Shown in pieces: positions 3,434 to 34,524 of a stretch of 64,000 nucleotides of DNA. The notes beneath the pieces were generated by a model, which saw only the letters and a program-made list of their open reading frames with translations, did no database searches and had not been told where the DNA came from. How positions within the stretch are numbered: the first letter of the stretch is position 1; each line of letters starts with the position of its first letter. A program made the translations under genes and the position numbers. The DNA lies in the sequence record MN871453.1; one strand, 5' to 3'.

Positions 3434-4111
3434 TTAGACAGTCGGGTTACTCTTGCTCGTTATCCACTGACTCGCAAGTGTTTTGAGTGATCCACCGCGA
3501 TCGACGAAAACACTCAAATTACTGTTGTCAGTGTAGACTACATTGCGGTCTTCGCTATTGACGGTAGCGGAGACAATGACATGGTTTCCTTTCACAAGTG
3601 CATTTTCGCTTATGATAGTACGAAGCGTGTAACCCACGATATCAATAAGATCAGACAACTGCTTATAGCGGTATTGTCCATCGTTGGTTGTGTCCTCTTC
3701 GTAGTCAGTACGTAAGGATTCGAATAAATAGTATCCTACCCACAGCGGTGCCACCGCGTAGATACTCGGGTTAAAAACGTTGTCGAGTCGGGGAAGGAGA
3801 CTATAGTGGTACAAAGTCGTCACGCCGTAACCCAGATTTGCCAACGTGTTAAGAACAAATCCATCCGGGAGGGCGTTGATCTTGGCGTCAATTCCTGGAA
3901 ATTTAGTTCCCAGGTGACTGATAAGACGGGAGCGTACTTCCGTTTCTCGCATATTGATTGGCCAAGATAAAATAGGAACTTGCTTAAACGGTTTATTCTC
4001 GCCTGCAAAATCCGAAGCACTCGGCGTTCTTGTCCAAGGAGTTAATAACTCAATCGACTGGATAATAGCAGGGAGCGTACTGTCGTCGTAAATTCCAACT
4101 GAAGTGGGCAT
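3434..4111 (-). CDS. hypothetical protein
   Basis: 225-aa ORF, GAGAGG RBS. Confidence 0.85.
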   Translation of the reverse strand: MPTSVGIYDDSTLPAIIQSIELLTPWTRTPSASDFAGENKPFKQVPILSWPINMRETEVRSRLISHLGTKFPGIDAKINALPDGFVLNTLANLGYGVTTLYHYSLLPRLDNVFNPSIYAVAPLWVGYYLFESLRTDYEEDTTNDGQYRYKQLSDLIDIVGYTLRTIISENALVKGNHVIVSATVNSEDRNVVYTDNSNLSVFVDRGGSLKTLASQWITSKSNPTV

Positions 4112-4181
4112 GATAAATCCTCTCTTCGTAATAAGTGTCTCTTAAATTAAATCAGATTTTAAGTATTATCATAAAACTAAG

Positions 4182-4214
4182 AAAATAAAAGAAAGAGAGG
4201 CCAACGCCTCTCTT
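4182..4214. repeat. 33-bp direct repeat copy 2 / terminator of the protease operon
   Basis: AAGAGAGGC-caac-GCCTCTCTT plus A tract; one mismatch versus 1120-1152. Confidence 0.85.
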
Positions 4215-4220
4215 TTCTAT

Positions 4221-4967
4221 TTACCAACGTGCAACCAGACCACTTTTCCCGGAAAGTAAGGTAGCGCGATCTAAGTTACGAATCGCATCAATCGTCCCTT
4301 TAAAACTGGACTCTACCGAAACCAGACTTTTATCTTCCGCCATACTACGAATGATTGCCGGTTGAACCGGAACCACCAACGCCGATTCGCAAGACGGCGA
4401 CATGTATTTGTTCGCAACAGAAAGACCCGGTTCGTTAACGAGATCCCAGGTGATGATGTTATCAACGTACTTACGTACCTTCCCGCCCACGACTCTGTCG
4501 GTCGCCATACTGCGAATACTGAAGGCCAGATTCTCGTCCGGGTTAGCCATGATTTTATCAAAGTCATCACGACGTGCACCGGTGGAACAGACTTCGCCCA
4601 TGATCGCACAAATGCGCTGACCATTCGGTAACACGAAGTTAGGTACTACCCAAACTTTACGGATATGGATCGCCCAGTTCCGCTCATCAATCGTGTGGAT
4701 ACGCTGAATGAACTTACGGTAGTCAGGGTAGTCATACTCTTTTGGATGACCCCACTCACCACGCAAATACCCTTCGTTAATCCGCTTCTGAAACAAGCCG
4801 TTTGCAGCGAGGATACGCTCTACACGCTGCTGGTCATAAACTGCCCCGATGCTGTTATCAAACTCTAACGCACCCAGGATAACTTCCAGGTAGTTATTAT
4901 CGAGGCGTTTAATGTTACCGACCCGGTTCACTCCTTTCAGCGCCGTTACTTCAAATGACATTCCCAT
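4221..4967 (-). CDS. prohead protease (phiKZ gp175 / SPN3US gp245 type)
   Basis: LRGEWGHP, AFSIRS and IITWDLVNEPGLSVANKY motifs; start moved to ATG 4967, just after the upstream stop. Confidence 0.9.
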   Translation of the reverse strand: MGMSFEVTALKGVNRVGNIKRLDNNYLEVILGALEFDNSIGAVYDQQRVERILAANGLFQKRINEGYLRGEWGHPKEYDYPDYRKFIQRIHTIDERNWAIHIRKVWVVPNFVLPNGQRICAIMGEVCSTGARRDDFDKIMANPDENLAFSIRSMATDRVVGGKVRKYVDNIITWDLVNEPGLSVANKYMSPSCESALVVPVQPAIIRSMAEDKSLVSVESSFKGTIDAIRNLDRATLLSGKSGLVARW

Positions 4968-4971
4968 GATT

Positions 4972-5697
4972 TCACCATCGTACAATATTAGAGAAACTCG
5001 ACTCATACGAAAGCAGTCCCGCCTTGCGTTCCTTGGCAGCGTTGAATTCTGCCTTCGATAACGGGAACATCTCAACTTGGCTTTGGTCGAACGGCTCTTC
5101 TTTGTACCGTTCTAGCGCAGGGAGCACCATCTGATAATACCCGCGTTTCAACGAAAAGAACGGCGAGAACTTTAAGGACGGACCCGTCACCTCAATGAGG
5201 ATTCTGGTTTCAATACTTTTCTGGTAGTCGTCTTTGATCAAACGAAGTTCGTCGATAAAACACTTCCCGACGACCCGCGCTGGGTAGGGCTGGTCTTCCC
5301 GGTCGACATTCACTAACCAACGTTCTTCTGACCACTCTGCCATCGGGCAGATAGATTTCCCTGGTCGCAAAGAACCCTCTACATCAATGGCGTAGATCGT
5401 ATAGCCACCGAGCCATGTGTCATCACCCGCGCAGTGGGCTTTACTGTCGAGAAAGTCCCGTAACGCGACACCGTATCCTCGCAGACAATCCACCACAGTG
5501 ATTCCGGTACAAACCCGTTTCACACTTTCATCTTCTCCCGCCATCGTCCGTTGAATTTCACGCGGAACGAAAACGTCGATCTTTGGATTAGGTGAGATAT
5601 GATAAAGGACGCGGTGGTGTGTATCGACCTGTAAGGCGTTGATGGCGTGCTCTTGCTGTTTACGGACGAAAGCAGTTAACCGTTCAAATGGTGACAT
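4972..5697 (-). CDS. probable head protein with ADP-ribosyltransferase-like motifs
   Basis: LYHIS...FVPR...ED..KRVC..TVVDCL...SEERW pattern; lies within the vRNAP/protease operon. CDS is secure, function is inferred. Confidence 0.55.
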   Translation of the reverse strand: MSPFERLTAFVRKQQEHAINALQVDTHHRVLYHISPNPKIDVFVPREIQRTMAGEDESVKRVCTGITVVDCLRGYGVALRDFLDSKAHCAGDDTWLGGYTIYAIDVEGSLRPGKSICPMAEWSEERWLVNVDREDQPYPARVVGKCFIDELRLIKDDYQKSIETRILIEVTGPSLKFSPFFSLKRGYYQMVLPALERYKEEPFDQSQVEMFPLSKAEFNAAKERKAGLLSYESSFSNIVRW

Positions 5698-5699
5698 AC

Positions 5700-6425
5700 T
5701 TACGCCCTCAAGAGTCGTTCAATCGGCTGCGTGACTTCGTTAGGGTTCACAATCGCCGAATCCAAGCCATCACCAGTGTAGCTTCCTGAGATCTTCGCCG
5801 TGGTATCGGACGAACCATCAATTACGTTACGTAACGGAATCCACGTGAACGGCGTTGTTTTGAGTTCGTTGTAGCTGAAGAGTTTCTCACGAAGTGGGAC
5901 TTTACGGTCATGCGATAAACGCGCAATCTGTGCGATAATCATCTCGCCGATGGTCGGGGTCGCTACCAGTTGCGTTCCGGTGTATTTTTTCGTTTCTTCA
6001 AAGAACCCGCTGAGCGAGATATAGTTGTAGAAGAATGGGATTCTTCCTCGGGCCAGAATCTCTTCAAACAGGTAATAAAGAAGGGTGTTGTCTTTGACCA
6101 GGTTCAAGTTTTTGATCACGGTGCTACCAGGAGTAAAATGGAAGTCGTAATAGCTCCGACCTTGGTACTCTAACTGACGAATTTCAGCCGGGGCGATTTC
6201 CATCATACTGGGTGTGGTTGAAACTGCGTATTCACCCGCTTCGTTACAGATCGCAAAGAAGCCGATGATCATAATACGCTTACCCATACTGATCAATTGT
6301 TTTGCGCGAAAGGACTCTTGGATCACAATCCGGCAGCCGGTCGTAGTGACCAGACTGCCGTTTGGGAGTTCACGTAACGTCGCTTTCATCGCATCAGGTT
6401 TATGTTTCCACTGAGCGATATCCAC
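5700..6425 (-). CDS. rpoC: virion RNA polymerase beta' C-terminal subunit (phiKZ gp176 / SPN3US gp244 type)
   Basis: EMIIAQIAR resembles EVIVRQMLR; WIPLRNVIDGSSDTTAKISGSYTGDGLDSAI aligns by eye with beta' region H; operon position. Confidence 0.7.
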   Translation of the reverse strand: MDIAQWKHKPDAMKATLRELPNGSLVTTTGCRIVIQESFRAKQLISMGKRIMIIGFFAICNEAGEYAVSTTPSMMEIAPAEIRQLEYQGRSYYDFHFTPGSTVIKNLNLVKDNTLLYYLFEEILARGRIPFFYNYISLSGFFEETKKYTGTQLVATPTIGEMIIAQIARLSHDRKVPLREKLFSYNELKTTPFTWIPLRNVIDGSSDTTAKISGSYTGDGLDSAIVNPNEVTQPIERLLRA

Positions 6426-6436
6426 ACTCGACTCCT

Positions 6437-7969
6437 TTAAGCTACCGTAACATCATCCGCTTCGATGATACCGATCTTTTCCGCTGCACTGAAACTCAGG
6501 ACGTCAAAGTTGGCCACTAACCATTTCGCCAGGTAACGTACCGCGGCGGTATAGGCTGCGGTAGTCCCGTCTTCCTGATTCTCTTGCATCTCCGTTTCCA
6601 CGATGTCGATAATGTCCTCGGCATCGATAAAGGTGAAGATGTGCTGGCAGACTTTCTGTTTGACTAACTCGAACAGGTTCGGGTCGTTGTCAATGTTCCA
6701 GTTAACGTAAAACTTGCCGGACTTGAGATCTTCAATCACCCGTGCCATCGCTTCTTCTTTACTGAAGCCACCCGGGAGTTGGTCATCGTTCAGTTCACCC
6801 AGCGCTGCTGAAAGTTCCGGTACGAAACAGTTAGATAGGCGTTTAAGGAACGTGTCGCGCGAATAACGTTGACGTTGCACTTCGAGTGCCTGCCAGCGTT
6901 TAAGGTTCAGTTCATTATTGGACAGGAACTGGGTCAGTAAACGCTGACCGCCTTTCGGGTCTAGAACGCCGCCAATCACGCTCTCCGGGGTTAAACCCTG
7001 GCTGAGCCCCTGACGGTAGACCGGGCCGAATACAACGATCTCTGCGTCTTCTGAGGTCGTTGCAATCTGACTTTTACCGGTGAAGCGAATCACCAGTTGT
7101 CCACGGCGACTGCAACCGCTGAGCCAACCCAGGCCGTTCTGAATCAGGTAGCCGTACTGGAGTTTCATCGCGTTGATCGTCGCGTTGAATTCCGGTAAGG
7201 TTAACCCGGTACCCGGCAGCGGGTCTTGACTAAAGCTGTCAATCAGGAAATAGGTAATAATACCCAGATCAGTCATTGACGCATCGGTAAAGGTACCAAC
7301 ACAACGCTGGCCTTCTTTCTGCTGTACTAAACCAGCAATGAACCGGGTCACCGGACAAACCGGTACAACCGTCTCGTTACGGAAGAGGACGTTGTAGATT
7401 GCAACAACGGTATCGGCGCCGTATTTCGCAATAGCATCCGCTAACCCGTCGTCCAGTTCGCTCACACCGGTCTTCATTCCGTCAATCAGATCGACGTCAG
7501 TTTTTTCCGGGGCATTTTTGATTCGGGTAAACAGCGGCGCATTCGGTTTGTACTGACCGAACGTATCGATGACGTACGGGTTGTAGATGATCGGCGACGG
7601 GTCGTATTGAGTGATGGTGAACTCTTTCGGTTCCACGCCTTTCATGCGATCGAGGATCTTTCCGGTAACGTCGCTGATCAACGGAACAACGGTGTTACGG
7701 ACATACCCGATCTGACGCAGTAACGCTCCGCCGACTACCTCTGCTGCACCGGCCACCGCTCCTTCGTGCGGTTCCGCCATCCCAATGGTACGCTGGGCAT
7801 TGTTGAACAACACCGCGTCGTAGTTCTCCATGGACGGCTTATGGCTCTGGAAGAGCGGTAAAGATTCGGCCACCGGACTAAACATCACGCTACCGGTGCG
7901 CGGGAAAAGAAACAGCCCTTCATTACTGACGACCGTTTTCGCCAAGGCGATAGATTTTTTATTTAACAT
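6437..7969 (-). CDS. internal head protein (SPN3US gp243-like)
   Basis: 510 aa, synteny between vRNAP beta and beta'-C genes, N-terminal PSME candidate cleavage site. Confidence 0.65.
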   Translation of the reverse strand: MLNKKSIALAKTVVSNEGLFLFPRTGSVMFSPVAESLPLFQSHKPSMENYDAVLFNNAQRTIGMAEPHEGAVAGAAEVVGGALLRQIGYVRNTVVPLISDVTGKILDRMKGVEPKEFTITQYDPSPIIYNPYVIDTFGQYKPNAPLFTRIKNAPEKTDVDLIDGMKTGVSELDDGLADAIAKYGADTVVAIYNVLFRNETVVPVCPVTRFIAGLVQQKEGQRCVGTFTDASMTDLGIITYFLIDSFSQDPLPGTGLTLPEFNATINAMKLQYGYLIQNGLGWLSGCSRRGQLVIRFTGKSQIATTSEDAEIVVFGPVYRQGLSQGLTPESVIGGVLDPKGGQRLLTQFLSNNELNLKRWQALEVQRQRYSRDTFLKRLSNCFVPELSAALGELNDDQLPGGFSKEEAMARVIEDLKSGKFYVNWNIDNDPNLFELVKQKVCQHIFTFIDAEDIIDIVETEMQENQEDGTTAAYTAAVRYLAKWLVANFDVLSFSAAEKIGIIEADDVTVA

Positions 7970-8160
7970 TACACGATCCCCTCTTGAACACGACGCGCGG
8001 CGATGGCAGCACCAATGGCGGCAGCCAGGTCTTCTTCGATGTTAGCGCCATCGGGGATTCTGAGGTCTTCGCTACGGGCATCAAGCATAATGCGACGCCC
8101 TACTTCGAGAATATTGGCGACGCTAGTCTGCGCAATTTCCTGTAAACCTTCGTTATTCAT
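7969..8160 (-). CDS. small conserved protein of the vRNAP operon
   Basis: 63 aa, AAGG RBS, stop overlaps the next start (translational coupling). Confidence 0.7.
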   Translation of the reverse strand: MNNEGLQEIAQTSVANILEVGRRIMLDARSEDLRIPDGANIEEDLAAAIGAAIAARRVQEGIV

Positions 8161-8203
8161 CTTCTTAACCTTATTTTACAAAGCGCTTTGAAAAGTAGGG
8201 AAT

Positions 8204-12738: not shown

Positions 12739-14370
12739 TTAAGCTTCACCAGTAATGTTACGTAAGACTAATTGTACGTTATCAACATCCGCGCTCTTAG
12801 AGAGAGTACCGCGGGAAGAGAGGAACCATTCTTTACGACCTTTTAGCATTTCGTATTCAGCAATAGAATCCGAGGCATAGATCGCTGTAAAGGTACAACG
12901 GTCGCCATCGAAGTCGGCACCCAATGGAGAGAGATAGCTGACGCCTATCCCCATAGAGTTAACGTACTCTACCGATTTGCTTTGATCAGGGAATTCGAAA
13001 CAAATGAAATCGTCACCCAGTCTCCGCCAGTCGTGGCCGAGTTCAGCTTTTACGCTAGAAACAATAGTCGGTTTGCAGTAAATGTTTGCTATGAAAGTCG
13101 ACCCTTGTCCTGTAACAGGGTAACGAGTCACTACGCCTGCTAACTTACCCCATTCACGATACCCGGACAGGTAATAAAGCGAGGTCATGTTAATCGGGCT
13201 AACAAACCGCTTATCAAAACCCGCTGGGAGTTCGTTGATATCAGCGAAGAACCGGAACCCTTCTTCACCCCAATAGAGCAGTCCTAAGTAATAACCGTCT
13301 ATTAAAATTGGTTTATTTCTGAAAGCCGGGGTTTTATAGCGGGTGATCTGGGCATCTAAACCGTCACGGGTTGTCCAACGTTCAACGGCCTCCGGGGAGG
13401 GCTGTACGTATTCAGCACGGAGAGTTTTGGGGTTCGTCAAACGGATTTCATCTTCGCTGTTACCCGAGAAAACTTCACCTAGCCAACCTGAGCGTAAGAA
13501 ATAGCGTGTCTTAGGCAGGACCGCTTTGATGGTCTGGTAGAGCCCTAACTGAACGTGGTTGATCCCTGGCGTATTCGTTTCACCGATCCGAGTCCCTGTG
13601 ATCTTCATTGGCGAAATAACGTTTGCTGTACCGTTAATGATTTTACGTGACGCCCATTTTGCAGCCGCAAAACCTTTCTTTCCTTTAATCATGTTAAAGA
13701 TACTTTCGAATATCTCGTTGAACTGTCGTTGTAATTGTAAACGACTGTTATTGATTAAAGGGTCTTCAGAAGGCTCACGACCCATCTCCAGACTGTTGGA
13801 GATTGAGATGATAGAACGATAGAATTTGTTGATTTCGTCTTCGCTCGTACGCCCTGAGGTTTCTACCATCAGATCACGCAGACCTGCCGGCATGACCAGG
13901 ACTTTATCAGTCAGCGCTTTGTCTTTATTTTTGTTGATGAGCTTCACGCGGAGATTACGGAGTTCGGAATCGCCTTCTTCTAATTTCAAATCGGGGAAAT
14001 GACGTACAAAAAAGGAGAAGCCGGTTTCGCCCTCCATTTCGTTGCTGGGTTCGAAATCGAAGGTTTCTGTGTTAAAGACGGCATAACGTCGCCCTTCCAG
14101 AATATCCAAATAAAGACGTTTTAATGAACCGAGTCGTTTATAAACGAGCGGGTGAAAAACACGAGTATGGAGTTCGATATAACTGAAACGCCCATCGCGT
14201 TCAGGTGAACCTAAGGGACCGAATGTTTCTACTGAGAATAAACCGTCCTTATGGAAATTACGGGTACCGGTTTCAAAGATCTCGGTCGTACTGGTCGGCC
14301 GCATACTCCGTATCAGTTGAGGGGTTAAATCCATGAGGAAGATATTGAATGGGATATCGTTAGTACGCAT
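12739..14370 (-). CDS. rpoC: virion RNA polymerase beta' N-terminal subunit (phiKZ gp180 type)
   Basis: GLFSVETFGP, GKKGF and the catalytic ADFDGD motif. Confidence 0.93.
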   Translation of the reverse strand: MRTNDIPFNIFLMDLTPQLIRSMRPTSTTEIFETGTRNFHKDGLFSVETFGPLGSPERDGRFSYIELHTRVFHPLVYKRLGSLKRLYLDILEGRRYAVFNTETFDFEPSNEMEGETGFSFFVRHFPDLKLEEGDSELRNLRVKLINKNKDKALTDKVLVMPAGLRDLMVETSGRTSEDEINKFYRSIISISNSLEMGREPSEDPLINNSRLQLQRQFNEIFESIFNMIKGKKGFAAAKWASRKIINGTANVISPMKITGTRIGETNTPGINHVQLGLYQTIKAVLPKTRYFLRSGWLGEVFSGNSEDEIRLTNPKTLRAEYVQPSPEAVERWTTRDGLDAQITRYKTPAFRNKPILIDGYYLGLLYWGEEGFRFFADINELPAGFDKRFVSPINMTSLYYLSGYREWGKLAGVVTRYPVTGQGSTFIANIYCKPTIVSSVKAELGHDWRRLGDDFICFEFPDQSKSVEYVNSMGIGVSYLSPLGADFDGDRCTFTAIYASDSIAEYEMLKGRKEWFLSSRGTLSKSADVDNVQLVLRNITGEA

Positions 14371-14414: not shown

Positions 14415-17400
14415 ATGGCCAAAAGAGAAAAAATAGATCTGGATCGTTTTGACGATTTTGATCTCGAAGATAATTGGGGCATGGACAAAGAACCTCAAGG
14501 TGCGAAAGACGGAAGCGGTAAACGCGAGGCTGTAAAAAAGGCAGGAAAGACCGTTCTCCGTGAGATGGGGAAAACGACCTTTACCAGTCAGATGGCGAAA
14601 ACCATCCTGAAAGAGGCCATGCCGCGTTCTTTCACTACAACCTTAGATAACGTTGATAAAGGTTTAATCGACGTTCGATCGCTTTACGCTGACGTCCGTA
14701 AAGATGCCGCCCCGATGCTGCGAGAAATGAAAGCGTTGGGTCGTACCGTCAACCGTCTTGTTCCTACACCGTATCAGAAAAAGATCGATGCGTTTCTGAC
14801 GAGAAACAACGGGGCAGATAAATCAGGTTCTCAACTGGCAGCGCTCAATATTGAAGACGCCGCGGTACTCCAGTCGTTAGCTCAAGTCTTCAATCAAGAC
14901 GACGACAAACCGAAGCAGATGAGCCCTGAGGAACTGACTGAGAAACTGACGGATCAGCAGTATAAAATAAAACTGGGTACGGCCATTGCGAGTATCCAGA
15001 ATCTCCTGGCGAAGCAGACCGCTTATCAGTTTGGTGCACAGCGTGCATTTCAAAAGAAAAGTATGGAGCTTCAAATTCGACAGCTGATGGTTTCGCGTGC
15101 CCATTTAGACGTGGCACAGAAGTCTGCGGTTGAAACCTCCAACCTGCTCAGAAGCGTTGTCGAAAACACCGCGTTACCTGACGTAGTAAAACAGCACCGT
15201 TCGGAAGAATTCCTTCGAATGGGCCGCGAGAAAATCTTTGGTCGCATCCAACAGTCAATGTACGACTGGACCAGTAATTATCGTAACCAGTTCAAAGACC
15301 GTGCGAAACAAGCCATTAACGACAGAATGCAAAAACTCACTATGGGTTTTTCAATGGCCAACGATTCTCTCGAACAGCTCGAGGCGCAACGGGAATTACT
15401 GGCGTCAATGGGTGTCACCCCGGAGGAGTTTTTAGCAGGGGCAGCAGGGAACTGGGGTGCGTTACAAATCGGTAAACGTATCGGAAAACGCATTAATAAA
15501 AGTGCGCCTTCACTACGTCGATTGGACGGTACATTCCAGGGCGTCAACTACCTCTTTAACAACAAAGAACGTTTAGCGTCAGATTGGGGAAATTCCGGTT
15601 ACCGTTACGGGAAATGGTATAATCCCATCGAGAACTTTGTTAAAGACACCTTACGTGGCGGTTACCGTGACGAAGGCGTAGTTCGCGCCGGAGGGTTGGG
15701 GAACGGAGAAAAAATCTCGACTGTAGACGAGCGTAAACTCAGCTATATGGAAGAGATGTCCGGGTACCTGTCCCGAATCTTACATAGTATCGACGTCCTC
15801 AGGACGGGCGATAATAACACGCAGCGCACGGTTTTCAACCGTCAGAAGGGCATTTTTACCTCCTTTAATGAATCGGTGGCGTCGACGCGTCAGGCGTTGA
15901 TTAAAGATACCGATATCAATTCACAGCGTGAGAATATTAATCGTCTTATCGAGAACATCGATAACAACAACCGGTTATCTCCCGACGCTAAAGGTAAAAT
16001 TTCTGATCACCTGATGACAAGGGCAAGAACCTCGAAAGCCTTTAACCCGGCAGCCCTAGCTAATGAGAAAATCTCAGGGTTATCCCGTGACGACCAACGC
16101 CTTTGGCAAGGACTGATGGCGAAACGTTATGGACTGAAACTGAACGAGAAAAGTGAATGGTCGCTTAACCCGTTCTCTTCTTCAAACGTTAACCTTAATA
16201 TCGATGCCGGTCAGTATAACTACGCCTCTAACCAAACGCAGGGTATCTTTAATCGTGCCCATGCGTTAGCGCAAACCGGTAACCTTGAAGAACTGATCTC
16301 AGAAGGCGCAGTGGTCTTTAAGAACGGTAATTGGGAAGTTAACCCAGACTATTACGGTTCACGCGTATCTGGTAAACCTTCACCGGGTAACAACGACTCG
16401 ACTAACCCTAACGACATGGGTCCACATCGTCCTCGTAACCCACCGCCGGGTACCCCGCCTATCACTGAACTCCGTCGCTTCGGACAAGATTGGACCAACC
16501 CGAATTCGGTTAACTTTAATCTTAATGGGAACCAACAAAATTCTTTCGGGACGGCGTTAGCGGAACAAACCGATAGAATCCTTGAGTCCATGAAACACTC
16601 TCAGTTGTTCTGGGATGAGCAAATGGCCAGAATAGAGGCACAGCTTACCGCGCTGGAAGGGTGTTGTCTCAACGGAGGAGGTGGCGGTGGCCAAGGCGGT
16701 GATACTGGCGATCAAGGCGGGCGTCGTCGTTTCTCACGGAACTGGGCTAAACGCGGGCTCCGTGCGGGTATCGGCGGTATTCGTCGTGGTGTGAAAGGGA
16801 TGTGGGATCTTGGCGGTTTACCGCTTAAAGCAGCAGGAGAGATCTTTAAGCGAGTACGTCGCCCGGCTTTCAATGCAGCGATGACGATCGGTACCTTTGG
16901 CCTGAATAAAGTCTTAGGTTTCGGGATGCAGGCGTTTGAGAAAGTTCAAGATGGCTATATCGCGACGGCACAGGGTTTAAAGAAAGTCATTGAAAAAGAA
17001 GGACTGGCAGCGGGTCGTTACGTTGACCAAGCCACCGGGAAGGTTATCAAGAAACTTTCTGACGTACGGGGCGCAGTCTGGGACGTGGTAAATAACACTC
17101 AGGTCCTGACCGACGACGAAGCGAGACGGGGTTTGTTTAACGCCGCAGGAAACCGCATTAAGTCATCCTTTAACAAAGCACTCGGTGCAGTGGGGAGTCT
17201 ATTAAACGGAAGGTTTACTCCTTATCATTTACTCAAAGGTGCTGCAGGCGGGTTAGGGAAAGGTCTCTTTTCCTTATTTGGTCGCTTACCAGATATTTAC
17301 GTGCTCGGAGAAATGAAACCGCGTCTCTACGCCAGTAAGTTGGCGAATGGGGAATATTTCTCGATGCGTACTGGGAAAGTCATCAAGAAACTTTCCGATA

Positions 17401-20400
17401 TTGACGGTGACGTCGGGGTAATTGACCCTCGTACCAGAACCATGACGCCTGTACTTTCCGCTGAGGATGCTGCTAAAGGATTGGTTGATAAGAATGGCCG
17501 TGGCGTTCGTACTGGACTGGCTAAACTTACGGGGATGATCGGCAATGGTCTCCGCGGTGTGGGCGGTTTACTTACAACCCCGTTTAAGATTTTAAATGGA
17601 CTGAAAAACGGTGCAATTAATTTAGCTTCTAACGGTTTGAGTGCAGTAGGCGGTGTTTTAAATAGAGGCTTGAATACAGGGATAGGATTCTCTGGCGGGT
17701 CGACATCGTGGCTAAAACGTATCTATCGACTCTTAGTTAATCAGTTCACCGGGAAAGATCCACTTGACGGCCTCGATACCGAAACAGGTAGTGTTTCGGG
17801 TATCAAGAATCGCTTAACGGGCGGGTTCGAGAAACTCAAGAATCGTACCGGGAGTTGGTGGCAGCGTCTTCAGAAAAAGAAACCGGAAGAGACCAAACCT
17901 GAACACGCTGAGAAAGCGGCGAAGGAAGGGGGTGGTTGGGGTAAACTGATCTGGGCCGCTATCACGGGAGTCGGTGCCATTGTCGGGAAAATTGCAACCG
18001 GATTCGGGAATTTCTGGAAATGGATCAAAGAACTTCCTCGCTGGATAAGTGGTGCGAAAGCGTTAGATGCTGCTGGGGATTTGGCAGGGGATGTAGCAGG
18101 CTCAGGAGGTAAGAGAGGCGGTCTGCTACGTAGAACCGGTAACGTACTGAAGAAAGTCGGGAAAGGGGCACTAGGGGTTGCGGGCTTCTTAGGAAGAGGG
18201 TTGTTTAGCGGAGTCGGGATGTTAGCAAGGGGCGCCGCGGTAGCGGCAGGGTCATTGCTCTCTGCGCCTGTTCTGGTCACAGCGGCGGTAGCTGCGGGCG
18301 TGGGTTACCTGATTTATAAAGGATACCAAGCCTACAAGAACAGAATGACCTCGCTGAGAAACTACCGTGCAGCACAGTACGGCGTCAACCCGAAAGACAG
18401 TGACCGGGCGGGTAAAGTACTTGCATTAGAAGAAGCGGTTCTGAAAAACAGTCAGATCTCAGGGCAAGGGAAACTCAAGATTGGTTCGTTACCTTTCCAA
18501 GAGTTACTGAGTGCCTTTGATGTTGAGATCACTGACCAGCGTAGTGTACAGCGTTGGACACGGTGGTATCAGATGCGTTTCGTTCCGGTCTTTACCCGTA
18601 ACGTTGAAACACTTTATCGGATGGACCCTAAAGCTAAAATCACCGAGAGTGAATTCCTGAAACCGAGTCAACGAGGGGACTTCGCCAAAGCCACCTTCAT
18701 TGCATCCGGTGGAAAAGAATCTCCTTATCTGGTCTCTGACTCGCCATTCCCTAATATGTCTTCAGTAACAGGTGATCGGTTTGTTGCCGGTTTCCGTGAC
18801 CAGGTCATTGCTGAGTTTGCGGAAGCAGAGAAAAAGGCGATCGCCTCGGGCGAGAAGAAACTGGTCACTGCTTCAGACGTGAAGCAACCGAAGGGAATCG
18901 AGTTACTGAACAAAAAGGCACAGGAAGCACAAGCCAATAATGCTAACCGGGCAGTAAATCCAACAACCGATCTCTACTATTCACCGGGCGATACCCGGAA
19001 AGGGCTAACTTCCCTGACCGGCGATAAGCGCAAGGATGAATTGATCGAGATGGGGAACCGCATTGATGACCTGACCTCGATACGTGTTAAACTTTACGGT
19101 TTACGCGAACTGTTGAAAGGGGACGTTAACGCCTTACTCGCTTTAGAGACTGAGGCGTTGAAATTCATTCGATACGGTGATAAAGGAGTAGCCCTCTGGA
19201 CAGGGAACAGCGAACAGTTCTTCGCTAACTGGAACGGTCAATTCGGTATTAACAGTAATAACGCCAATGAAAAGGCACAGTGGCTATTCTGGTTCACGAA
19301 ACGTTTCCTGCCTGTCTTCTTGAACTTCTGTTCTGAAAGCAATTTCATCGCGCCTAATAGTTCGCCGATGGTCGCATGGAAGAAACTGAACGCGAGCGAT
19401 CTCCTGAAGATTGCAAACTTCATGAACAGCGCGACGACCGAGGTCAATGGCGGGAAAGTCTCAGTCTGGACCATTAAAGCATCACCGTGGCCTAACCGCT
19501 TCTCAAACACGGACAGTAGTGTTATTCAGTCTAACCTGGATGCATTACGTCTCGAAGGGAAAAAGGAAGTTTACCAAGAGAAAGTGAAGACAGAAGCGGA
19601 AATCGCCAAGATGACCTTTGATGGTAAAGCGCTTCGTAACTCGTCACTGGGTAACAAGATTGCTGACCTTTATAGCGATAACCGTGCGTTAACTGCCGAT
19701 ACGCGGGGACGCGCTACTGGCGCTAACGGTGTCGGTGTTTACGGTCAACGTGTGGGTTCAATGGGAACCTCCTTTGAACGTTCGGAAGCGGGTAGCAGTT
19801 TCACGGATACCAACTTACTGCATTCCGGTGAAGGTACCGGCGGGTCGATTAATGATATCCCTGATCCGAAAGGAGACGGTTGGGATAACGTGAAAGATTC
19901 GATTGCAGCAGTGGCTAAGATGGTCGGCGTTGATGCCGGTTCATTGGCGGCAATGGTGGCGCAGGAATCTCGCTTTGAGCTTCGGGCGAAGAACGGGAAC
20001 TCCTCAGCAGCAGGACTCGGTCAGTTCCTTGATGGAACCTGGAAAGAGATTCTCCCTACTCTTGTTAAGAAATACGGTGTGAACCCGAATACGTCTCAGT
20101 ATGACCCACGTGCGTCGTTATTGGCCACGGCGGAATACATGAAACAGAACGCGAAGATCATCGGTGACATTGGTAGACCATTGACGACCACTGATATCTA
20201 TATGGCGCACTTCTTAGGGCCAGGGGGTGCAAGGAACGTACTGCGTGTACCGACCAACACACCGATTCAATCGGCGATGGGTGATAACTATTATAAAGTT
20301 GCGAGAGCGAACCCTGAGATCTTTAAGAACGTCAGGACGACGGGCGACCTTGTAGCGAGTCTTGGTGGTTATCTCTCCAGAAACGGTGGGCAATACGCGC

Positions 20401-20999
20401 AGCTGGCGAACGGGATGACAGGGAAGGCTGGACCAGCCGTTCCGGGTGGGGGAAGTGATGCGGTCAGTACCAGTGCCCCGAAAGAGACAGAGACAACTCC
20501 GCCTGTTGCACCATCGACGGGATCAAACACTATCGTCAGCAATCCGGCGAAAGGTGAGATGCCTGTCGGTAGTACGACAAGTACGTCTGTCACGACAAGG
20601 GGGACCGATACGGTCACACCGGCAACGACCCGAACCACGGATAGCCGTGACGCTAAAGCATTGGCTCAGCAGGCAGTACAGCGCGAGAACACTGCGGAAG
20701 CTAATCGCATTGCTGTGGCAGCATCCAGAAAACAATCAGCTGAAACGGCGAGTACGACAAGTACATGGGCCGACACGTTGAATGAACAGCTTGAGACGCA
20801 GAAATCTATGGACAGTACGTTGAAGTTGATCAAAGGTCTTCTGGAGAAAGGGGTGCCGGTAACCGGTGGGGAAAATAATTCTTCCCCTAAGACCAATCCT
20901 AACAGCAGCGAATTAAGAGGGAAAGATATCAGTACGGGGAGTCGAGGGAAACAACCTTTTGAACCGTTCGATACGAGTATCTCGCAGAACTTTCGTTAA
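14415..20999 (+). CDS. tail tape-measure protein with C-terminal lytic transglycosylase (phiKZ gp181 type)
   Basis: 2194 aa, helical/Gly-Ala rich; SLT motifs AQESRF, AAGLGQFLDGTW and YMAHFLGPGG at about 19860-20420; divergent from RNAP genes as in phiKZ. Confidence 0.88.
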   Translation: MAKREKIDLDRFDDFDLEDNWGMDKEPQGAKDGSGKREAVKKAGKTVLREMGKTTFTSQMAKTILKEAMPRSFTTTLDNVDKGLIDVRSLYADVRKDAAPMLREMKALGRTVNRLVPTPYQKKIDAFLTRNNGADKSGSQLAALNIEDAAVLQSLAQVFNQDDDKPKQMSPEELTEKLTDQQYKIKLGTAIASIQNLLAKQTAYQFGAQRAFQKKSMELQIRQLMVSRAHLDVAQKSAVETSNLLRSVVENTALPDVVKQHRSEEFLRMGREKIFGRIQQSMYDWTSNYRNQFKDRAKQAINDRMQKLTMGFSMANDSLEQLEAQRELLASMGVTPEEFLAGAAGNWGALQIGKRIGKRINKSAPSLRRLDGTFQGVNYLFNNKERLASDWGNSGYRYGKWYNPIENFVKDTLRGGYRDEGVVRAGGLGNGEKISTVDERKLSYMEEMSGYLSRILHSIDVLRTGDNNTQRTVFNRQKGIFTSFNESVASTRQALIKDTDINSQRENINRLIENIDNNNRLSPDAKGKISDHLMTRARTSKAFNPAALANEKISGLSRDDQRLWQGLMAKRYGLKLNEKSEWSLNPFSSSNVNLNIDAGQYNYASNQTQGIFNRAHALAQTGNLEELISEGAVVFKNGNWEVNPDYYGSRVSGKPSPGNNDSTNPNDMGPHRPRNPPPGTPPITELRRFGQDWTNPNSVNFNLNGNQQNSFGTALAEQTDRILESMKHSQLFWDEQMARIEAQLTALEGCCLNGGGGGGQGGDTGDQGGRRRFSRNWAKRGLRAGIGGIRRGVKGMWDLGGLPLKAAGEIFKRVRRPAFNAAMTIGTFGLNKVLGFGMQAFEKVQDGYIATAQGLKKVIEKEGLAAGRYVDQATGKVIKKLSDVRGAVWDVVNNTQVLTDDEARRGLFNAAGNRIKSSFNKALGAVGSLLNGRFTPYHLLKGAAGGLGKGLFSLFGRLPDIYVLGEMKPRLYASKLANGEYFSMRTGKVIKKLSDIDGDVGVIDPRTRTMTPVLSAEDAAKGLVDKNGRGVRTGLAKLTGMIGNGLRGVGGLLTTPFKILNGLKNGAINLASNGLSAVGGVLNRGLNTGIGFSGGSTSWLKRIYRLLVNQFTGKDPLDGLDTETGSVSGIKNRLTGGFEKLKNRTGSWWQRLQKKKPEETKPEHAEKAAKEGGGWGKLIWAAITGVGAIVGKIATGFGNFWKWIKELPRWISGAKALDAAGDLAGDVAGSGGKRGGLLRRTGNVLKKVGKGALGVAGFLGRGLFSGVGMLARGAAVAAGSLLSAPVLVTAAVAAGVGYLIYKGYQAYKNRMTSLRNYRAAQYGVNPKDSDRAGKVLALEEAVLKNSQISGQGKLKIGSLPFQELLSAFDVEITDQRSVQRWTRWYQMRFVPVFTRNVETLYRMDPKAKITESEFLKPSQRGDFAKATFIASGGKESPYLVSDSPFPNMSSVTGDRFVAGFRDQVIAEFAEAEKKAIASGEKKLVTASDVKQPKGIELLNKKAQEAQANNANRAVNPTTDLYYSPGDTRKGLTSLTGDKRKDELIEMGNRIDDLTSIRVKLYGLRELLKGDVNALLALETEALKFIRYGDKGVALWTGNSEQFFANWNGQFGINSNNANEKAQWLFWFTKRFLPVFLNFCSESNFIAPNSSPMVAWKKLNASDLLKIANFMNSATTEVNGGKVSVWTIKASPWPNRFSNTDSSVIQSNLDALRLEGKKEVYQEKVKTEAEIAKMTFDGKALRNSSLGNKIADLYSDNRALTADTRGRATGANGVGVYGQRVGSMGTSFERSEAGSSFTDTNLLHSGEGTGGSINDIPDPKGDGWDNVKDSIAAVAKMVGVDAGSLAAMVAQESRFELRAKNGNSSAAGLGQFLDGTWKEILPTLVKKYGVNPNTSQYDPRASLLATAEYMKQNAKIIGDIGRPLTTTDIYMAHFLGPGGARNVLRVPTNTPIQSAMGDNYYKVARANPEIFKNVRTTGDLVASLGGYLSRNGGQYAQLANGMTGKAGPAVPGGGSDAVSTSAPKETETTPPVAPSTGSNTIVSNPAKGEMPVGSTTSTSVTTRGTDTVTPATTRTTDSRDAKALAQQAVQRENTAEANRIAVAASRKQSAETASTTSTWADTLNEQLETQKSMDSTLKLIKGLLEKGVPVTGGENNSSPKTNPNSSELRGKDISTGSRGKQPFEPFDTSISQNFR

Positions 21000-23199: not shown

Positions 23200-23231
23200 A
23201 AAAAAGAGAGGGTTTTCACCCTCTCTTTTTT
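23200..23231. terminator. bidirectional terminator
   Basis: 14-bp stem with A/T flanks between convergent genes. Confidence 0.85.
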
Positions 23232-24033
23232 ATACTGTTTCTAATTTTAACGTACTCACGGTACGTTTTGCTACCCGCGGAGCGAGTCGTTGACAACTCT
23301 CGTTTATTGGATTAAACCAGTCCTCTTTCGGCCAACCTTTCTTCACTCGATAAAGTAACGTAGTATAAGGGATTGCCTTTTCTCTGGCGAGTTCTGCAAC
23401 AGAGACCTGCTGACCTTCCCACTCAACGTTGATGGTTGCTATTCTCCCTGGTTGCGTTGTGTACCGCGTATAGTCAGCGCGTCTTTCAGCGGGTGCCCAG
23501 TAACAACTCAATGCATTGAGGGGCTCATCTGTTTTTTCAATCCACAAGAAATCAGTTTCTTCTCTAGGATAACCTATTTCGTCAAACGCCTTTCTGTACG
23601 AAGTCCAATGAACTGGAAGAGTCAACGATTTCCCGCTGCGGTTCTTTATCCTTGAGAAACTTGCTCTCAATTTTGCGCGGGTCTTCGGGTGTATAATTTC
23701 TGGTCGACTCTTTTTAGCTCGGCGTTCCAATACGGTAAGAACACTATCTCCTCGGAATAAAGAAGATTGTGTTTTCCTGTAATCTAACCGGTACCGTTCA
23801 ACGATCTCACTTAACGTAAGGACTTCACTCAATACAGGATAAAGTCTTTTCTTGTACCCCACTAAATTTACGAAGAGGGGTCCGACATCCTTCATACCGG
23901 GAGTTTTTACCAACGCTCTCTTTATTCTCTGGTAAACCGTGATTCTTTTCATACCCGTAATCTCCACGATTTCCGGGACAGTGCGTTTAACGCCGTTGTA
24001 AAGATATACAGGCTGATTTTTAACAGCAGGCAT
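23230..24033 (-). CDS. DNA-binding protein: three HTH-like modules plus degenerate HNH-endonuclease-like core
   Basis: Repeats YNGVKRTVPEIVEITGMKRITVYQRI / LTLSEIVERYRLDY / WEGQQVSVAELAREKAIPYTTLLYRV; central HWTSY...IGYPRE...SCYWA. Confidence 0.6.
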   Translation of the reverse strand: MPAVKNQPVYLYNGVKRTVPEIVEITGMKRITVYQRIKRALVKTPGMKDVGPLFVNLVGYKKRLYPVLSEVLTLSEIVERYRLDYRKTQSSLFRGDSVLTVLERRAKKSRPEIIHPKTRAKLRASFSRIKNRSGKSLTLPVHWTSYRKAFDEIGYPREETDFLWIEKTDEPLNALSCYWAPAERRADYTRYTTQPGRIATINVEWEGQQVSVAELAREKAIPYTTLLYRVKKGWPKEDWFNPINESCQRLAPRVAKRTVSTLKLETV

Positions 24034-30054: not shown

Positions 30055-31470
30055 TTACTGTTTCCAGTAAGGTTTGTATTTACCCATTGCAATTCTGATC
30101 AGGTCATAGCTGCTCAGGAAATGTTTCTCTTCTTTGATTTCCTTGAACTGCCAATGGCCGCGAGTTTCCCCTAACAGCTCGTCCCAATCGTAACCTTGCT
30201 CTTTGATCTTTTCGAAGATCTCTGGCGGGGTCATCGCATAACCTTCCAGTTTCCACATGAAGTTACGAATCTGACACAGACCAGAGGTCAGCTCTAACGC
30301 ACGGCGCAGTTTATAGTCGTCGTCGATTTTGTCACGGACGGCGTTACGCGTGAAAGATACTTCCGGGTAGATCGCCAGAGAGAGGTTAGTTGTATTACTA
30401 CCCATCCCGTAATACTTATTCGTTTCGCGCAGGTAGTGTAGCTGAGTTAAGTGAACGAGTAAGCCTTCTGCCTGAGAGAAGACCAGCTCAAACGGTGCAC
30501 CGGATTGACCATATTTACCGCGCAGGTTCATACAACGCACTTTAACGAGGTCTTTGTCTTCCTTCGATCCCATTTCACCGCGACCGTAAAGCGGAAGACG
30601 CGAGCCGTCAGTTAGCGGAGAACGACCGTGAACAAACCACATGTTATTCGGAATAAAGGTGAATTTTTCGGTGGCGTTCTTGATCGTCTTACCAGACTGG
30701 AGGTCGGCCATGATTTTGTGCGGAGGCGCATTCGGGTCCATATTCGCTTTCGCCCCGATATGGGCAGTTAACATGGAATAGAACGAATGGCGGCCATTGA
30801 GCCCCGGCATCTGCATCATGATCTGGGTTTTGTAACGCCCGTCGTTCATGAAGATCATGTTGTTGTCTTTAGAGCCGATTTCGTTATCGCCAAATTTTTC
30901 TTCAATGGCGTCAAAAGACATCATTGACCAGGAATCGATTTCTTCCATGGTTGGCGGATACATCTTGATCAGCTGTCCGTCATGGTTAGGGAACGGAGTG
31001 GTCAACATAGGGACTTTCGTTTTCTTATCGACTTTCATTTCGCCGTATTTTTTACGGACGTCCCAATAGTCGTTCCCGGACATTTTTAACATGTTAGTGA
31101 AGAGAAACTTTTCATTCTCTTCGAGGCCGTGTTCGGTGATACGCGGCATTCTGGCAGCACGGTACCCTAAACCTTCAATATCTTTAGAGCCTTCGGTCTC
31201 GTAGAAAAAGCTGTTGACGGCATCGTAGTACAGTTCCTGAGGCTGTAACATCATGAAATCAGCCAGGGTCGATTTAAACTGGTTGTTCTCGCCTACGACG
31301 GCGTTGATATTCGCCACCCCACCGTTTAAATACATTTCCCCGGCTTCGCCTTCGACGTAACGACCAGAGAAATGATCAAACAAACAGTTGGTGTTCAGTT
31401 TAGGGGTAGAGGCATCGGCTTTCTTATCTTCGCTCATGACACCCGCCGGGCTCAGTGAAAATCCGCTCAT
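30055..31470 (-). CDS. uvsX: RecA/UvsX-like recombinase (phiKZ gp152 type)
   Basis: P-loop-like GENNQFKST, YETEGS, EIDSWS (Walker B region), KGKYGQSG-like RGKYGQSG. Confidence 0.8.
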   Translation of the reverse strand: MSGFSLSPAGVMSEDKKADASTPKLNTNCLFDHFSGRYVEGEAGEMYLNGGVANINAVVGENNQFKSTLADFMMLQPQELYYDAVNSFFYETEGSKDIEGLGYRAARMPRITEHGLEENEKFLFTNMLKMSGNDYWDVRKKYGEMKVDKKTKVPMLTTPFPNHDGQLIKMYPPTMEEIDSWSMMSFDAIEEKFGDNEIGSKDNNMIFMNDGRYKTQIMMQMPGLNGRHSFYSMLTAHIGAKANMDPNAPPHKIMADLQSGKTIKNATEKFTFIPNNMWFVHGRSPLTDGSRLPLYGRGEMGSKEDKDLVKVRCMNLRGKYGQSGAPFELVFSQAEGLLVHLTQLHYLRETNKYYGMGSNTTNLSLAIYPEVSFTRNAVRDKIDDDYKLRRALELTSGLCQIRNFMWKLEGYAMTPPEIFEKIKEQGYDWDELLGETRGHWQFKEIKEEKHFLSSYDLIRIAMGKYKPYWKQ

Positions 31471-32491: not shown

Positions 32492-32869
32492 TTATGACAC
32501 TGCCGACAACGAATGCATGTTGACAATATTTTTCAGTTCCTGACGAAGTGTGAACTCGCCATCCTCCACGCCTTCTTTTAACCAGCGGGGGATCATCTCT
32601 TCGAAGTAATTAGCGACCTTTTCGTGCGGTAAGGTTCTAATCGCTTCGCACTGTTTTTCATCCCAAAGAATCTCAGGGAGAATCGTACCTAGCAATAATC
32701 CTTTGGAATCCGTTGTCAAGTTTAAGCGACGATTCATACTCGAAGCTAATCGTTGACATCCACCCGAACGACCAGAGAGTAGCGTGTAAAAAGAACCCAA
32801 TATTAAAACACGCCTACCTTTCGTCGTAAAGAGTTTAGGTCCGAAGACCGCTAAAAGTATTTTGATCAT
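32492..32869 (-). CDS. hypothetical protein
   Basis: 125 aa, coupled to the RNase H stop (ATGA). Confidence 0.7.
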   Translation of the reverse strand: MIKILLAVFGPKLFTTKGRRVLILGSFYTLLSGRSGGCQRLASSMNRRLNLTTDSKGLLLGTILPEILWDEKQCEAIRTLPHEKVANYFEEMIPRWLKEGVEDGEFTLRQELKNIVNMHSLSAVS

Positions 32870-34524
32870 AGTTTACCCGTGATCTCAAAAAGGTTAGAAT
32901 TGAGCGACGCAGTAAACAGCGTGTCACCGTCCACTTCCATTAACGTGGCGTAACGGAAAGCACGCGTGCCATCTGGCCATGTGATGACGCGTATTCTGAG
33001 GTCTTCAGAACCCAACGCGTTGACCGTATTCCTTAACGGGATATCTTGTCCTATTTTTAATTTGATTGTGGCTTTCCCTGTTGTCCCGTCAGCCAGTTGG
33101 TAATTGGCTGTAACAGAAATTGCCTTGTTCGGCGGGTCCATGGCCTCAGTGGGTTTTGTGACAGGTTTCTTTTTCCCTTCTTGGGTCGTCTTCACACAGT
33201 ATGAAGTGATATCCGTGATCGTCGTTTTTCCCTTGCCTGTAAACCCGTATCCTAACATGGTCAGAAGTGTCTCAAACCGCGTCAACAGACGGAAACCTAA
33301 AAAGGTCGGTCTCAGCTCCTCAATAAGCGCAACTTTATCCGGAGACCGGATAGTGCTCTTCTCGGCGTCGTCCCATAAGACAGAACGTTTGTCCTGTATC
33401 AGACTGACGTATCGATCTGCGTTAAGGATATTTTCAAGATGACCCAGCGTCATGATCTGAGTGCCGTCGTAGTACCGGCTCTTCAGAAACTCTCCGAGTA
33501 ATTCCAGGACAGGTTCTTTTTCCTTAGCGAAGAGGATGGCTACTTTAGCAGTGGCAGTGGCCTTACCGATCATGTCGACTTCGGTGTCGTTACCGTGGTT
33601 CCCGAAGAAATAAACGTAGCGATCGTCATAGTCAACTTTGTAATGTGTCCGGTCAGTTAACGCATACCACCAACGTTGTTCCAGTAAGCGATTACTGGTT
33701 TTGGTGTTTTGTACGTATCCTTTACGGTCTGAAATGAGATAAACGGTTTTACCAGGTTCATCGCGTTCCAGAATCATTCCGCGGTTGGCGTTGTAATCAG
33801 CACGTTCATTCCCTGTATAACCAGCGTGACCTGGGATATACCCAAATAACATTCTGGTTTTCCCTTCCTCAACAATACTGTCGAAGAGAGAACAGAGCAA
33901 TTGCCAAAGATCTTTGTTTTGGACAGGTCGACGATCAGCAGTTAACCAACCGTTTCTTTCCCAATTAACACGATAGAAAAGTAACCCTTCTAAAACATAT
34001 TTCGAGTCCGCAAAGATAACAGACTCTTTTGGGCTCTTTTCTTTGACAATTGTGAGACTGTTTAACATCCCCATTAACTCAGTAAAGTTATTACTGGTTT
34101 TGTACTGACCACCGTATGCATCAATAAAGCTGATGGGGTTGACAGGCTTCACCGTTTTATTTTCATCGGCGTGTAAGATAAGATAGTTTTTATCTACCTG
34201 CCCAGTGAAGCCCGTCTCTTCATCTGCCTTAGTGACGACATCTTTACACCGGTGTTGTCTACCGTCGACATAACCGATGTTAGTAAACGCACCCTTAGCC
34301 TTTTTAATCTTCGCTTCTTTCTTGTCCGCAACCGGGTACGAATATCCGTGAATACCCCAGCCAGAAAGTAACGTTTGGGTATTACTTCCGCCGTCGCAGA
34401 ATAAAACAAGATTAAAACTGCCCGGTTCTGGGAATTCACCTTCCCACGGTTGCTCAATCTTCATGTTCAGAAGTTCCTGTTTCAAAGTATGTTCAGAAGA
34501 ATAAAGCGTCGCGTAAGAAATCAA
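32866..34524 (-). CDS. rnhA: ribonuclease HI with C-terminal extension (phiKZ gp155 type)
   Basis: FCDGG, SNNFTELMG, FADSKY, VQNKDLW and GHAGYTGNERAD motifs. Confidence 0.9.
   Translation of the reverse strand: MISYATLYSSEHTLKQELLNMKIEQPWEGEFPEPGSFNLVLFCDGGSNTQTLLSGWGIHGYSYPVADKKEAKIKKAKGAFTNIGYVDGRQHRCKDVVTKADEETGFTGQVDKNYLILHADENKTVKPVNPISFIDAYGGQYKTSNNFTELMGMLNSLTIVKEKSPKESVIFADSKYVLEGLLFYRVNWERNGWLTADRRPVQNKDLWQLLCSLFDSIVEEGKTRMLFGYIPGHAGYTGNERADYNANRGMILERDEPGKTVYLISDRKGYVQNTKTSNRLLEQRWWYALTDRTHYKVDYDDRYVYFFGNHGNDTEVDMIGKATATAKVAILFAKEKEPVLELLGEFLKSRYYDGTQIMTLGHLENILNADRYVSLIQDKRSVLWDDAEKSTIRSPDKVALIEELRPTFLGFRLLTRFETLLTMLGYGFTGKGKTTITDITSYCVKTTQEGKKKPVTKPTEAMDPPNKAISVTANYQLADGTTGKATIKLKIGQDIPLRNTVNALGSEDLRIRVITWPDGTRAFRYATLMEVDGDTLFTASLNSNLFEITGKL

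Follow-up and report, generated by a model that had tools for sequence, protein, structure and literature searches.

A 241-codon gene in a 64,000-nucleotide stretch of sequence record MN871453.1 (the window) is best read as encoding a member of a divergent, undescribed family of the ADP-ribosyltransferase (ART) superfamily, and as an accessory head protein gene of the Chimalliviridae, the family of nucleus-forming phages; we put the probability of this reading at roughly 40%. Support for the ART fold of the predicted protein is indirect, coming from structure models, a conserved residue pattern and language-model features, and the head location is suggested by a related virion protein of phage SPN3US. 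The gene belongs to a compact late operon that also encodes subunits of the virion RNA polymerase (vRNAP) and the prohead protease, an arrangement that is well supported, and its product may be an enzyme delivered with the phage DNA.

Predicted fold and structural relatives

The gene is a genuine ATG-initiated open reading frame (ORF) on the minus strand, as a sequence-only reading of this DNA had proposed, and the six motifs which that reading listed, as occurring in the order expected for an ART fold, are all present in the order given: YHIS (residues 32-35), FVPR (43-46), GEDESVKRVC (54-63), TVVDCL (67-72), YTIYAID (99-105), and AEWSEERWLV (120-129). Conservation was counted throughout in an alignment of 137 family members from 50%-identity clusters; the motifs fall on its most conserved columns, and each contains at least one that is near-invariant.

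AlphaFold models were built from 9 sequences (predicted local distance difference test [pLDDT] score, 82) and from 137 sequences (pLDDT, 92.8; predicted template-modeling score, 0.88). The predicted fold begins with a single N-terminal helix (residues 1-20), a strand at 30-35 (LYHIS), a conserved loop of 25 residues and a strand at 61-65 (RVCTG), continues with helices at 68-84 and strands at 99-105, 109-112, and 125-128 (ERWL), and ends with three long strands (138-193), a strand at 209-213, a helix at 215-234, and a low-confidence tail. YHIS, RVCTG, YTIYAID, and ERWL are thus modeled as beta strands and VVDCLRGY as a helix; FVPR is in a loop without regular strand structure, and beta2 is formed by RVCTG.

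A structural search with VIA-align, which is unbiased and independent of Foldseek, was run over 48,161 chains with both AlphaFold models, and about 18 to 19 of the 22 best chains belong to the ART superfamily, at low Z scores (4 to 6). The best matches include TreX, a KptA-like enzyme with bound ADP-ribose (9ld3), CARDS toxin, Scabin, AvrPphF/HopF, and mouse Tpt1, together with TreTu, ParT, pertussis S1, Xre-RES, VPA0770, NatT, PltA, MTX, MbcT, diphtheria toxin (DT), and pierisin, and lower matches are Arr, Runella Tpt1, LT, SpvB, and Tne2. The KptA-like chain has the lowest root mean square deviation (rmsd) and the highest identity among the best structural matches, and Arr ranks first when Foldseek's own 418 candidates are realigned. 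The list is uniform across the two models, and the unrelated chains match C-terminal hairpins only. The ART-like fold proposed by the sequence-only reading is supported by this ART-dominated list and by language-model features, with Arr, DarT/PARP, and Tox-ART-HYD1 as the nearest named families (see below), but the sequence searches place the protein in no known ART family.

The part of the model that superposes on the ART core (Table 1) was delimited from the alignments with TreX, 9ld3, CARDS, Scabin, pertussis S1, PltA, LT, ParT, the RES toxins, DT, and Arr. In five of these enzymes the alignment starts pair model residue 30 with LT residue 4, 26 with pertussis S1 residue 2, 26 with CARDS residue 3, 15 with DT residue 3, and 27 with Arr residue 13. 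Combined with the beta1 Arg or His of these enzymes (LT R7, pertussis S1 R9, CARDS R10, DT H21, and Arr H19), these starting points place H33 in register with that residue in all five.

An ESM Atlas shape search returned RES and DUF6886 clusters at TM scores of about 0.4. In BFVD, phage proteins of 120 to 190 residues match the N-terminal core only (Foldseek E values of 1e-5 to 1e-2), examples being a second protein of Klebsiella phage vB_KvM-Eowyn and proteins of Pseudomonas phage SL2 and Rhizobium phage RHph_Y68, and cellular AlphaFold clusters likewise match just this core. The core domain may therefore be much more widespread than the 241-residue family, possibly overlapping DUF6886.

Conserved residues

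Three residues, P45, E125, and W127, are invariant in all 137 sequences, and R61 (136), H33 and E55 (134 each), G74 (127), C71 (123), D56 (120), Y75 (119), and Y102 (117) are close to it. Positions conserved in at least 90% of members are H33, E55, R61, G74, G98, P112, G186, K222, L229, and W241, and those at 85 to 90% are S35, R50, D56, C71, Y75, and Y102.

Three of the conserved positions match the layout of an ART active site in the model, namely a His or Arg on beta1, a candidate second motif on beta2 followed by a Tyr-bearing helix, and a Glu on a later strand, and this correspondence is supported but indirect. The His strand and late acidic residue that had been proposed are supported in that H33 and E125 are among the most conserved positions of the family. 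The three sequences with Arg at position 33 retain every other motif. Strand beta2 follows the pattern R-[VI]-[CST]-[TV]-[ASG], with C, S, or T at position 63 (77, 32, and 18 sequences), T or V at 64 (67 and 52), and A, S, or G at 65 (76, 34, and 19), and is followed by the helix carrying G74 and Y75, a pattern that resembles the S-T-S motif. The late acidic motif is a single Glu, E125, at the start of its strand and not a Q/E-x-E motif, contrary to the ExE-like signature that had been suggested, as E121 and E124 both vary.

The protein ends in a tail modeled at low confidence, in which L229 (124 of 137 sequences), S230 (104), and the very last residue, W241 (131), are conserved, and which might be a docking or targeting peptide. 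RAY gp169 and SPN3US gp246, two family members discussed below, do not have this Trp tail. The tail residues S230-Y231-E232 fit a loose S/A/G-x-E protease motif, although such matches are uninterpretable in this protein.

Sequence and language-model searches

Curated ART profiles (Arr-ms, PTS_2-RNA, RES, PARP, ADPrib_exo_Tox, Enterotoxin_a, DarT, and others) gave no match above threshold, and a word-indexed search with the 137-sequence profile found nothing new. By language-model features (ESM Atlas), 49 to 65 of the 100 nearest clusters are Arr-ms, with a score of 0.94, and the next neighbors are a phage DarT/PARP cluster, Tox-ART-HYD1, DUF3990, DUF3841, and DUF6886. The ranking is unchanged when residues 21-135 are used alone. 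Feature scores of 0.9 to 0.95 arise for 4 to 10% of shuffled proteins and the approximately 150 shared features are few for a true member, so the result is a lead that agrees with the structural comparison and not proof.

A jumbo-phage family and its place near the prohead protease

The protein matches PHROG 5043, a group of unknown function (E value, 1.5e-36), and searching 1.84 billion cluster representatives with a profile gathered a family of 481 representatives (50% identity) at E values of 1e-3 or less, of which 410 are at 1e-10 or less. A tblastn search returned 60 phage records, all of them phiKZ-like or named jumbo phages, from Klebsiella, Serratia, Erwinia, Pectobacterium, Salmonella, Escherichia (Goslar), Proteus, Burkholderia, Vibrio, and Pseudomonas (Noxifer). 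All four family contigs inspected have a phiKZ-like context, and in three of these the member is directly beside an S80 protease gene. Goslar (gp224), RAY (gp169), Ea35-70, PCH45, and FBKp24 share the order gp177-like gene, gp176-like gene, candidate homologue, and protease, and the same synteny is found in metagenomic contigs. No second copy was found elsewhere in the window with the family hidden Markov model (HMM). In Serratia phage vB_SmaM_2050HW (MF285618.1, 100909-101602) the homologue is split between two annotated ORFs (105 and 110 residues), which may point to a frameshift, an error in sequencing, or decay of this copy.

The gene is under purifying selection, as its ratio of nonsynonymous to synonymous substitution rates against the FBKp24 orthologue is about 0.06, a value that is qualitative since synonymous sites are saturated. 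In the same comparison the candidate protein is 81% identical, less than the protease at 90%. In one contig the domain is tandemly duplicated at this locus (490 residues), a relative of 1,059 residues at the same position before the protease has a SUKH-like segment upstream and the family domain at its C terminus, and fusions of the domain to a GNAT acetyltransferase or a Pol-beta-type nucleotidyltransferase occur elsewhere. Duplications and fusions of this sort are usual for effector and conflict genes and unusual for core structural parts.

Operon organization and window context

Window positions 4000 to 8200 match the Klebsiella jumbo phages KpSz_1, KpZh_1, and KpZh_LPS_45 at 100% identity, KpLz-2_45 at 99%, and vB_KpM_FBKp24 at 77%; the genus of FBKp24, Maaswegvirus, is placed in the Chimalliviridae. 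The location proposed by the sequence-only reading, between the vRNAP beta'-C and protease genes, is correct: a homologue of phiKZ gp176 is immediately upstream and a Peptidase_S80 gene immediately downstream (Table 1). The former corresponds to SPN3US gp244, which is the vRNAP beta'-C subunit by genetics and proteomics (PMC5105663).

The candidate ATG is 2 nucleotides past the stop codon of the beta'-C gene and is preceded by GAGGG, a ribosome-binding site, and the protease ATG is 4 nucleotides past the candidate stop codon. The longest protease ORF (4221-5075, minus strand) starts at a TTG within the candidate gene, giving an overlap of 104 nucleotides, but this start is probably not used; since the first residue of the long ORF covered by the Peptidase_S80 match is 41, the ATG at 4967 is the likely start. 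The only strong terminator-like hairpin of the gene string directly follows the protease stop codon. The gene upstream of beta'-C is the positional equivalent of phiKZ gp177, SPN3US gp243, Goslar gp226, and RAY gp167, and a 63-codon ORF on the minus strand is listed between it and the vRNAP beta gene. The beta'-C gene also encodes 241 residues, and paralogy with the candidate was considered and rejected (BLASTP E value, 7.9; hhalign probability against phiKZ gp176, 0.07%).

Table 1. Coordinates of the candidate gene, its notable parts, and the genes of its operon
Feature	Coordinates	Strand	Basis
Candidate ART-like gene, 241 aa, ATG start	4972..5697	-	ORF; PHROG 5043; predicted ART-superfamily fold
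Part superposing on the ART core in the model, residues ~21-176	5170..5637	-	VIA-align model ranges 26-30 to 144-210
His33 codon, strand beta1 (LYHIS, 30-35), candidate NAD+-binding His	5599..5601	-	H in 134/137, R in 3/137
R61-V-C-T-G, strand beta2 (61-65), S-T-S-like, then helix 68-84 with G74-Y75	5503..5517	-	
E125-R-W127, start of strand 125-128, candidate catalytic Glu	5317..5325	-	E125 and W127 invariant
C-terminal tail LLSYE...RW, residues 229-241	4975..5013	-	pLDDT 43-56; conserved final Trp
vRNAP beta'-C subunit (phiKZ gp176/SPN3US gp244 homologue)	5700..6425	-	35% identity to gp176, E 3e-53; phrog_2926 virion structural protein
phiKZ gp177/SPN3US gp243-like head protein gene	6437..7969	-	phrog_3841; matching position; core gene cg58
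vRNAP beta subunit (phiKZ gp178-like), 1495 aa	8236..12723	-	phrog_3148, E 0
Another RNA polymerase subunit gene, first in this gene string	12739..14370	-	phrog_2986 RNA polymerase beta subunit, E 3e-185
Prohead protease, MEROPS S80	4221..4967	-	Peptidase_S80 Pfam match, E 6e-62
Terminator-like hairpin, 10-bp stem then T run	4192..4215	-	Closes the operon after the protease stop codon

Elsewhere in the window, a 2,194-codon ORF (14415-20999, plus strand) is transcribed divergently from the polymerase and protease genes, matches a very large PHROG annotated as tail fiber, and has a transglycosylase segment at residues ~1817-2104; it is probably a tail lysin of the phiKZ gp181 type. A 267-codon ORF (23230-24033, minus strand) has an HNH endonuclease match and possibly codes for a homing endonuclease. 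Downstream of the virion genes is a replication and recombination block on the minus strand, coding for a UvsX-like recombinase (30055-31470), a 552-residue RNase H-domain protein (32866-34524), and an 823-residue SMC/AAA-type ATPase (38615-41086). Approximately 70 to 84% of 31-mers sampled from positions 4200 to 8200 occur in 2025 wastewater metagenome libraries and in several isolate-type runs, which indicates that close relatives of this phage are common in sewage. In a search of public runs for evidence of expression, only wastewater metagenome libraries were found to carry the sequence, and these are uninformative.

A related protein in the SPN3US head

The sequence-only reading had proposed that the protein is packaged in the head, and for this there is indirect support from a relative, SPN3US gp246, which mass spectrometry of purified virions places in the head. 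In SPN3US nothing lies between the genes for gp244 and the protease, gp245, and gp246 (209 residues) is encoded directly after the protease. It is a member of the family by the HMM (E value, 4.6e-20) and by hhalign (95% probability), and its orthologue in phage Stratton matches the model by Foldseek (E value, 2e-13; TM scores, 0.68/0.77). It shares with the candidate H33, S35, P45, R46, E55, D56, R61, G74, Y102, E125, and W127, the adjacency to the S80 protease gene, and the same predicted fold; it differs in being just 20% identical and shorter, in having no Y75 in the alignment, and in the absence of the Trp tail.

In the SPN3US proteome, gp246 (23.9 kDa) is assigned to the head with 13 unique peptides, 61% coverage, and an abundance index (SC/M) of 0.92, next to 0.93 for the portal and 1.07 to 1.19 for the vRNAP subunits (PMC5694885 and its supplementary table 1). 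It is of full size with no processing noted, and eight SPN3US head proteins are processed (PMC5694885). It is also present at similar counts in 244(am84) and 218(am101) particles lacking all vRNAP subunits (PMC5694885 supplementary table 3), so its incorporation is independent of the polymerase. The cryptic protease paralogue of SPN3US was considered as an identity for gp246 and rejected, as that protein is gp117 (PMC5694885).

Virion data for the phage of the window or for closer homologues were not found in the literature: the phiKp24 paper contains no proteomics, and the text of a PCH45 Tn-seq and proteomics preprint (10.64898/2025.12.19.695335) does not mention the homologue, probably gp82, encoded immediately upstream of the protease gp81.

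Weighing the alternatives

Several results weigh against an ART carried in the head. The candidate protein matches no known family in Pfam, NCBIfam, or PADLOC, a Pfam scan of the 137 members gave scattered noise (Enterotoxin_a at an E value of 0.12 and DUF6886 at 0.097, each in one member), and two profile searches of PDB sequences found nothing. Structure prediction followed by Foldseek and profile comparison, the check put forward with the sequence-only reading, did yield a high-confidence ART-like model, but Foldseek against PDB and Swiss-Prot models returned only noise (influenza PA and VirB8, with rmsd above 8 Å), and hhalign, run three ways against an alignment of Escherichia coli kptA and 96 homologues, gave nonsignificant E values of 0.18 to 0.55 and motif pairings that differ between runs. 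The canonical middle residue of the active site, a Tyr or the first Ser of S-T-S, has no clear counterpart. Packaging is known for gp246 only, at 20% identity and from a gene on the opposite side of the protease, and RAY gp169 is absent among the 44 proteins of a shallow crude-lysate analysis (the RAY/Deimos-Minion list). Finally, phiKZ and 201phi2-1 have no family member beside the protease (family HMM, within ~6 kb), and the published table of chimallivirus core genes goes from cg58 (Goslar gp226) through cg59 (gp225) to cg60 (gp223), omitting Goslar gp224 and RAY gp169, from which the gene is taken to be accessory in the Chimalliviridae.

The main competing explanation, in our view somewhat unlikely, is a noncatalytic head protein in which an ART-like domain or a look-alike beta-sandwich has a structural or assembly role, for example within the internal protein mass, partnering the portal or inner body, or as a regulator or substrate adaptor of the protease, with the polar residues serving as protein contacts. 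The constant position of the gene beside the prohead protease and head genes, the stable presence of gp246 in the SPN3US head, the failure of Pfam and PDB profile searches to connect the family with enzymes, and the resemblance of the conserved, disordered, Trp-terminated tail to a docking peptide all agree with this. However, the pattern of invariance fits an ART active site and not an interface, with His replaced only by Arg, an invariant Glu opening its strand, and a beta2 residue that is small and polar, and the language-model features indicate enzymes. The fusions to GNAT and nucleotidyltransferase domains likewise suit a modifying enzyme, and an accessory gene that is absent from phiKZ would be an odd core assembly factor.

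An enzyme that consumes NAD+ without modifying host proteins is quite unlikely as an explanation. One form would be a NADase or NAD+ phosphorylase of the RES kind; another would be a Tpt1/DarT-like enzyme acting on phage nucleic acid, for example by capping DNA or RNA ends with ADP-ribose or by adding or removing groups on early transcripts. The best structural matches include RES toxins (NatT, Xre-RES, VPA0770, and MbcT) as well as Tpt1/KptA chains, the Atlas shape search also returned RES clusters, and Arr, DarT, and Tpt1-type families are nearest by language-model features. The profiles for such enzymes (Pfam RES and PTS_2-RNA) are nevertheless unmatched and the KptA comparison is not significant, and the protein has a single helix at residues 1-20 in place of a Tpt1-like N-terminal RNA-binding lobe; moreover, nothing separates this explanation from protein-directed transfer.

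An improbable alternative is that the protein is an enzyme or factor of the cytoplasm or nucleus, made late and unpackaged in this lineage, the operon reflecting timing and the SPN3US head location being lineage specific, as the low identity of gp246, the placement of its gene across the protease, and the lack of published virion data for closer phages would allow, but the strong HMM match to gp246, the shared fold, and the head location in model phages of the products of all neighboring operon genes speak against it.

Possible role early in infection

If the candidate is an ART of the head, the protein would be made late, enter the prohead in some ten or a few tens of copies, and leave the head together with the DNA and the virion polymerase; early in infection it would then ADP-ribosylate a target with NAD+ of the host. 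The families nearest by two independent measures, structure and language-model features (Arr, Tpt1/KptA, DarT-type, and small ART/RES toxins), act on small molecules, nucleic acids, and NAD+, and a nonprotein target (DNA, RNA, a small molecule, or NAD+ itself) is therefore at least as likely as host RNA polymerase, which is a less obvious target because chimalliviruses bring their own RNA polymerase.

A more specific version, about as improbable as the last alternative above, is that the head carries a nucleic acid-directed ART, nearer to DarT, Tpt1, and Arr than to the phage T4 enzyme Alt, that is released with the genome early in infection. Such an enzyme might ADP-ribosylate host DNA to stop host replication, or alternatively the termini of the phage genome or of early transcripts, shielding them from nucleases or sensors before the protein nucleus forms, and the long SUKH-containing fusions at this locus might be self-inhibited pro-forms.

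Literature searches on ADP-ribosylation in jumbo phages and chimalliviruses found nothing on this family and nothing describing Goslar gp224 or SPN3US gp246 as an ART; they yielded general statements about jumbo-phage ARTs, Alt as the model, and a DarG-like antitoxin from a chimallivirus. In the minutes between DNA ejection and formation of the nucleus, host defenses can reach nucleus-forming phages; vRNAP is the only well-understood ejected activity, and a function has been assigned to only a minority of the approximately 50 head proteins. If the packaged-ART reading is right, this conserved but fast-diversifying, enzyme-like protein of the head would be a concrete candidate for an early host-takeover or counterdefense activity, and the ART superfamily would gain a sequence-orphan family. 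Goslar, PCH45, RAY, and SPN3US, for which genetic tools and virion proteomics exist, offer direct tests of the idea.

Comparison with known systems

The closest functional analogy, and an analogy only, is T4 Alt, a head-packaged and injected ART (established knowledge; see also PMC5694885), with which the candidate would share a predicted ART fold, carriage in the head at low copy number, and a late gene. The two differ in that the candidate family is of the His type, 27 kDa in size, and without detectable sequence similarity to known ART families, and in that its member gp246 is unprocessed. Alt, by contrast, is an R-S-E enzyme of ~70 kDa that is cleaved by the T4 prohead protease.

Among smaller ARTs, Arr (PF12120), the NAD+:rifampin ADP-ribosyltransferase, is near by language-model features, but there is no Arr-ms Pfam match, the number of shared features is below that usual for true members, and the candidate has the 25-residue conserved beta1-beta2 loop and an additional C-terminal beta-hairpin and helix region. 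The NAD+ lobe of Tpt1/KptA (PF01885) is the relevant comparison within that family, from which the candidate differs in having no N-terminal RNA lobe with its Arg-His-Arg and no significant hhalign match. To the TreX, TreTu, ParT, Xre-RES, NatT, and MbcT toxins there is no sequence relation; no antitoxin or immunity gene is adjacent to the candidate, and its gene is embedded in a virion operon.

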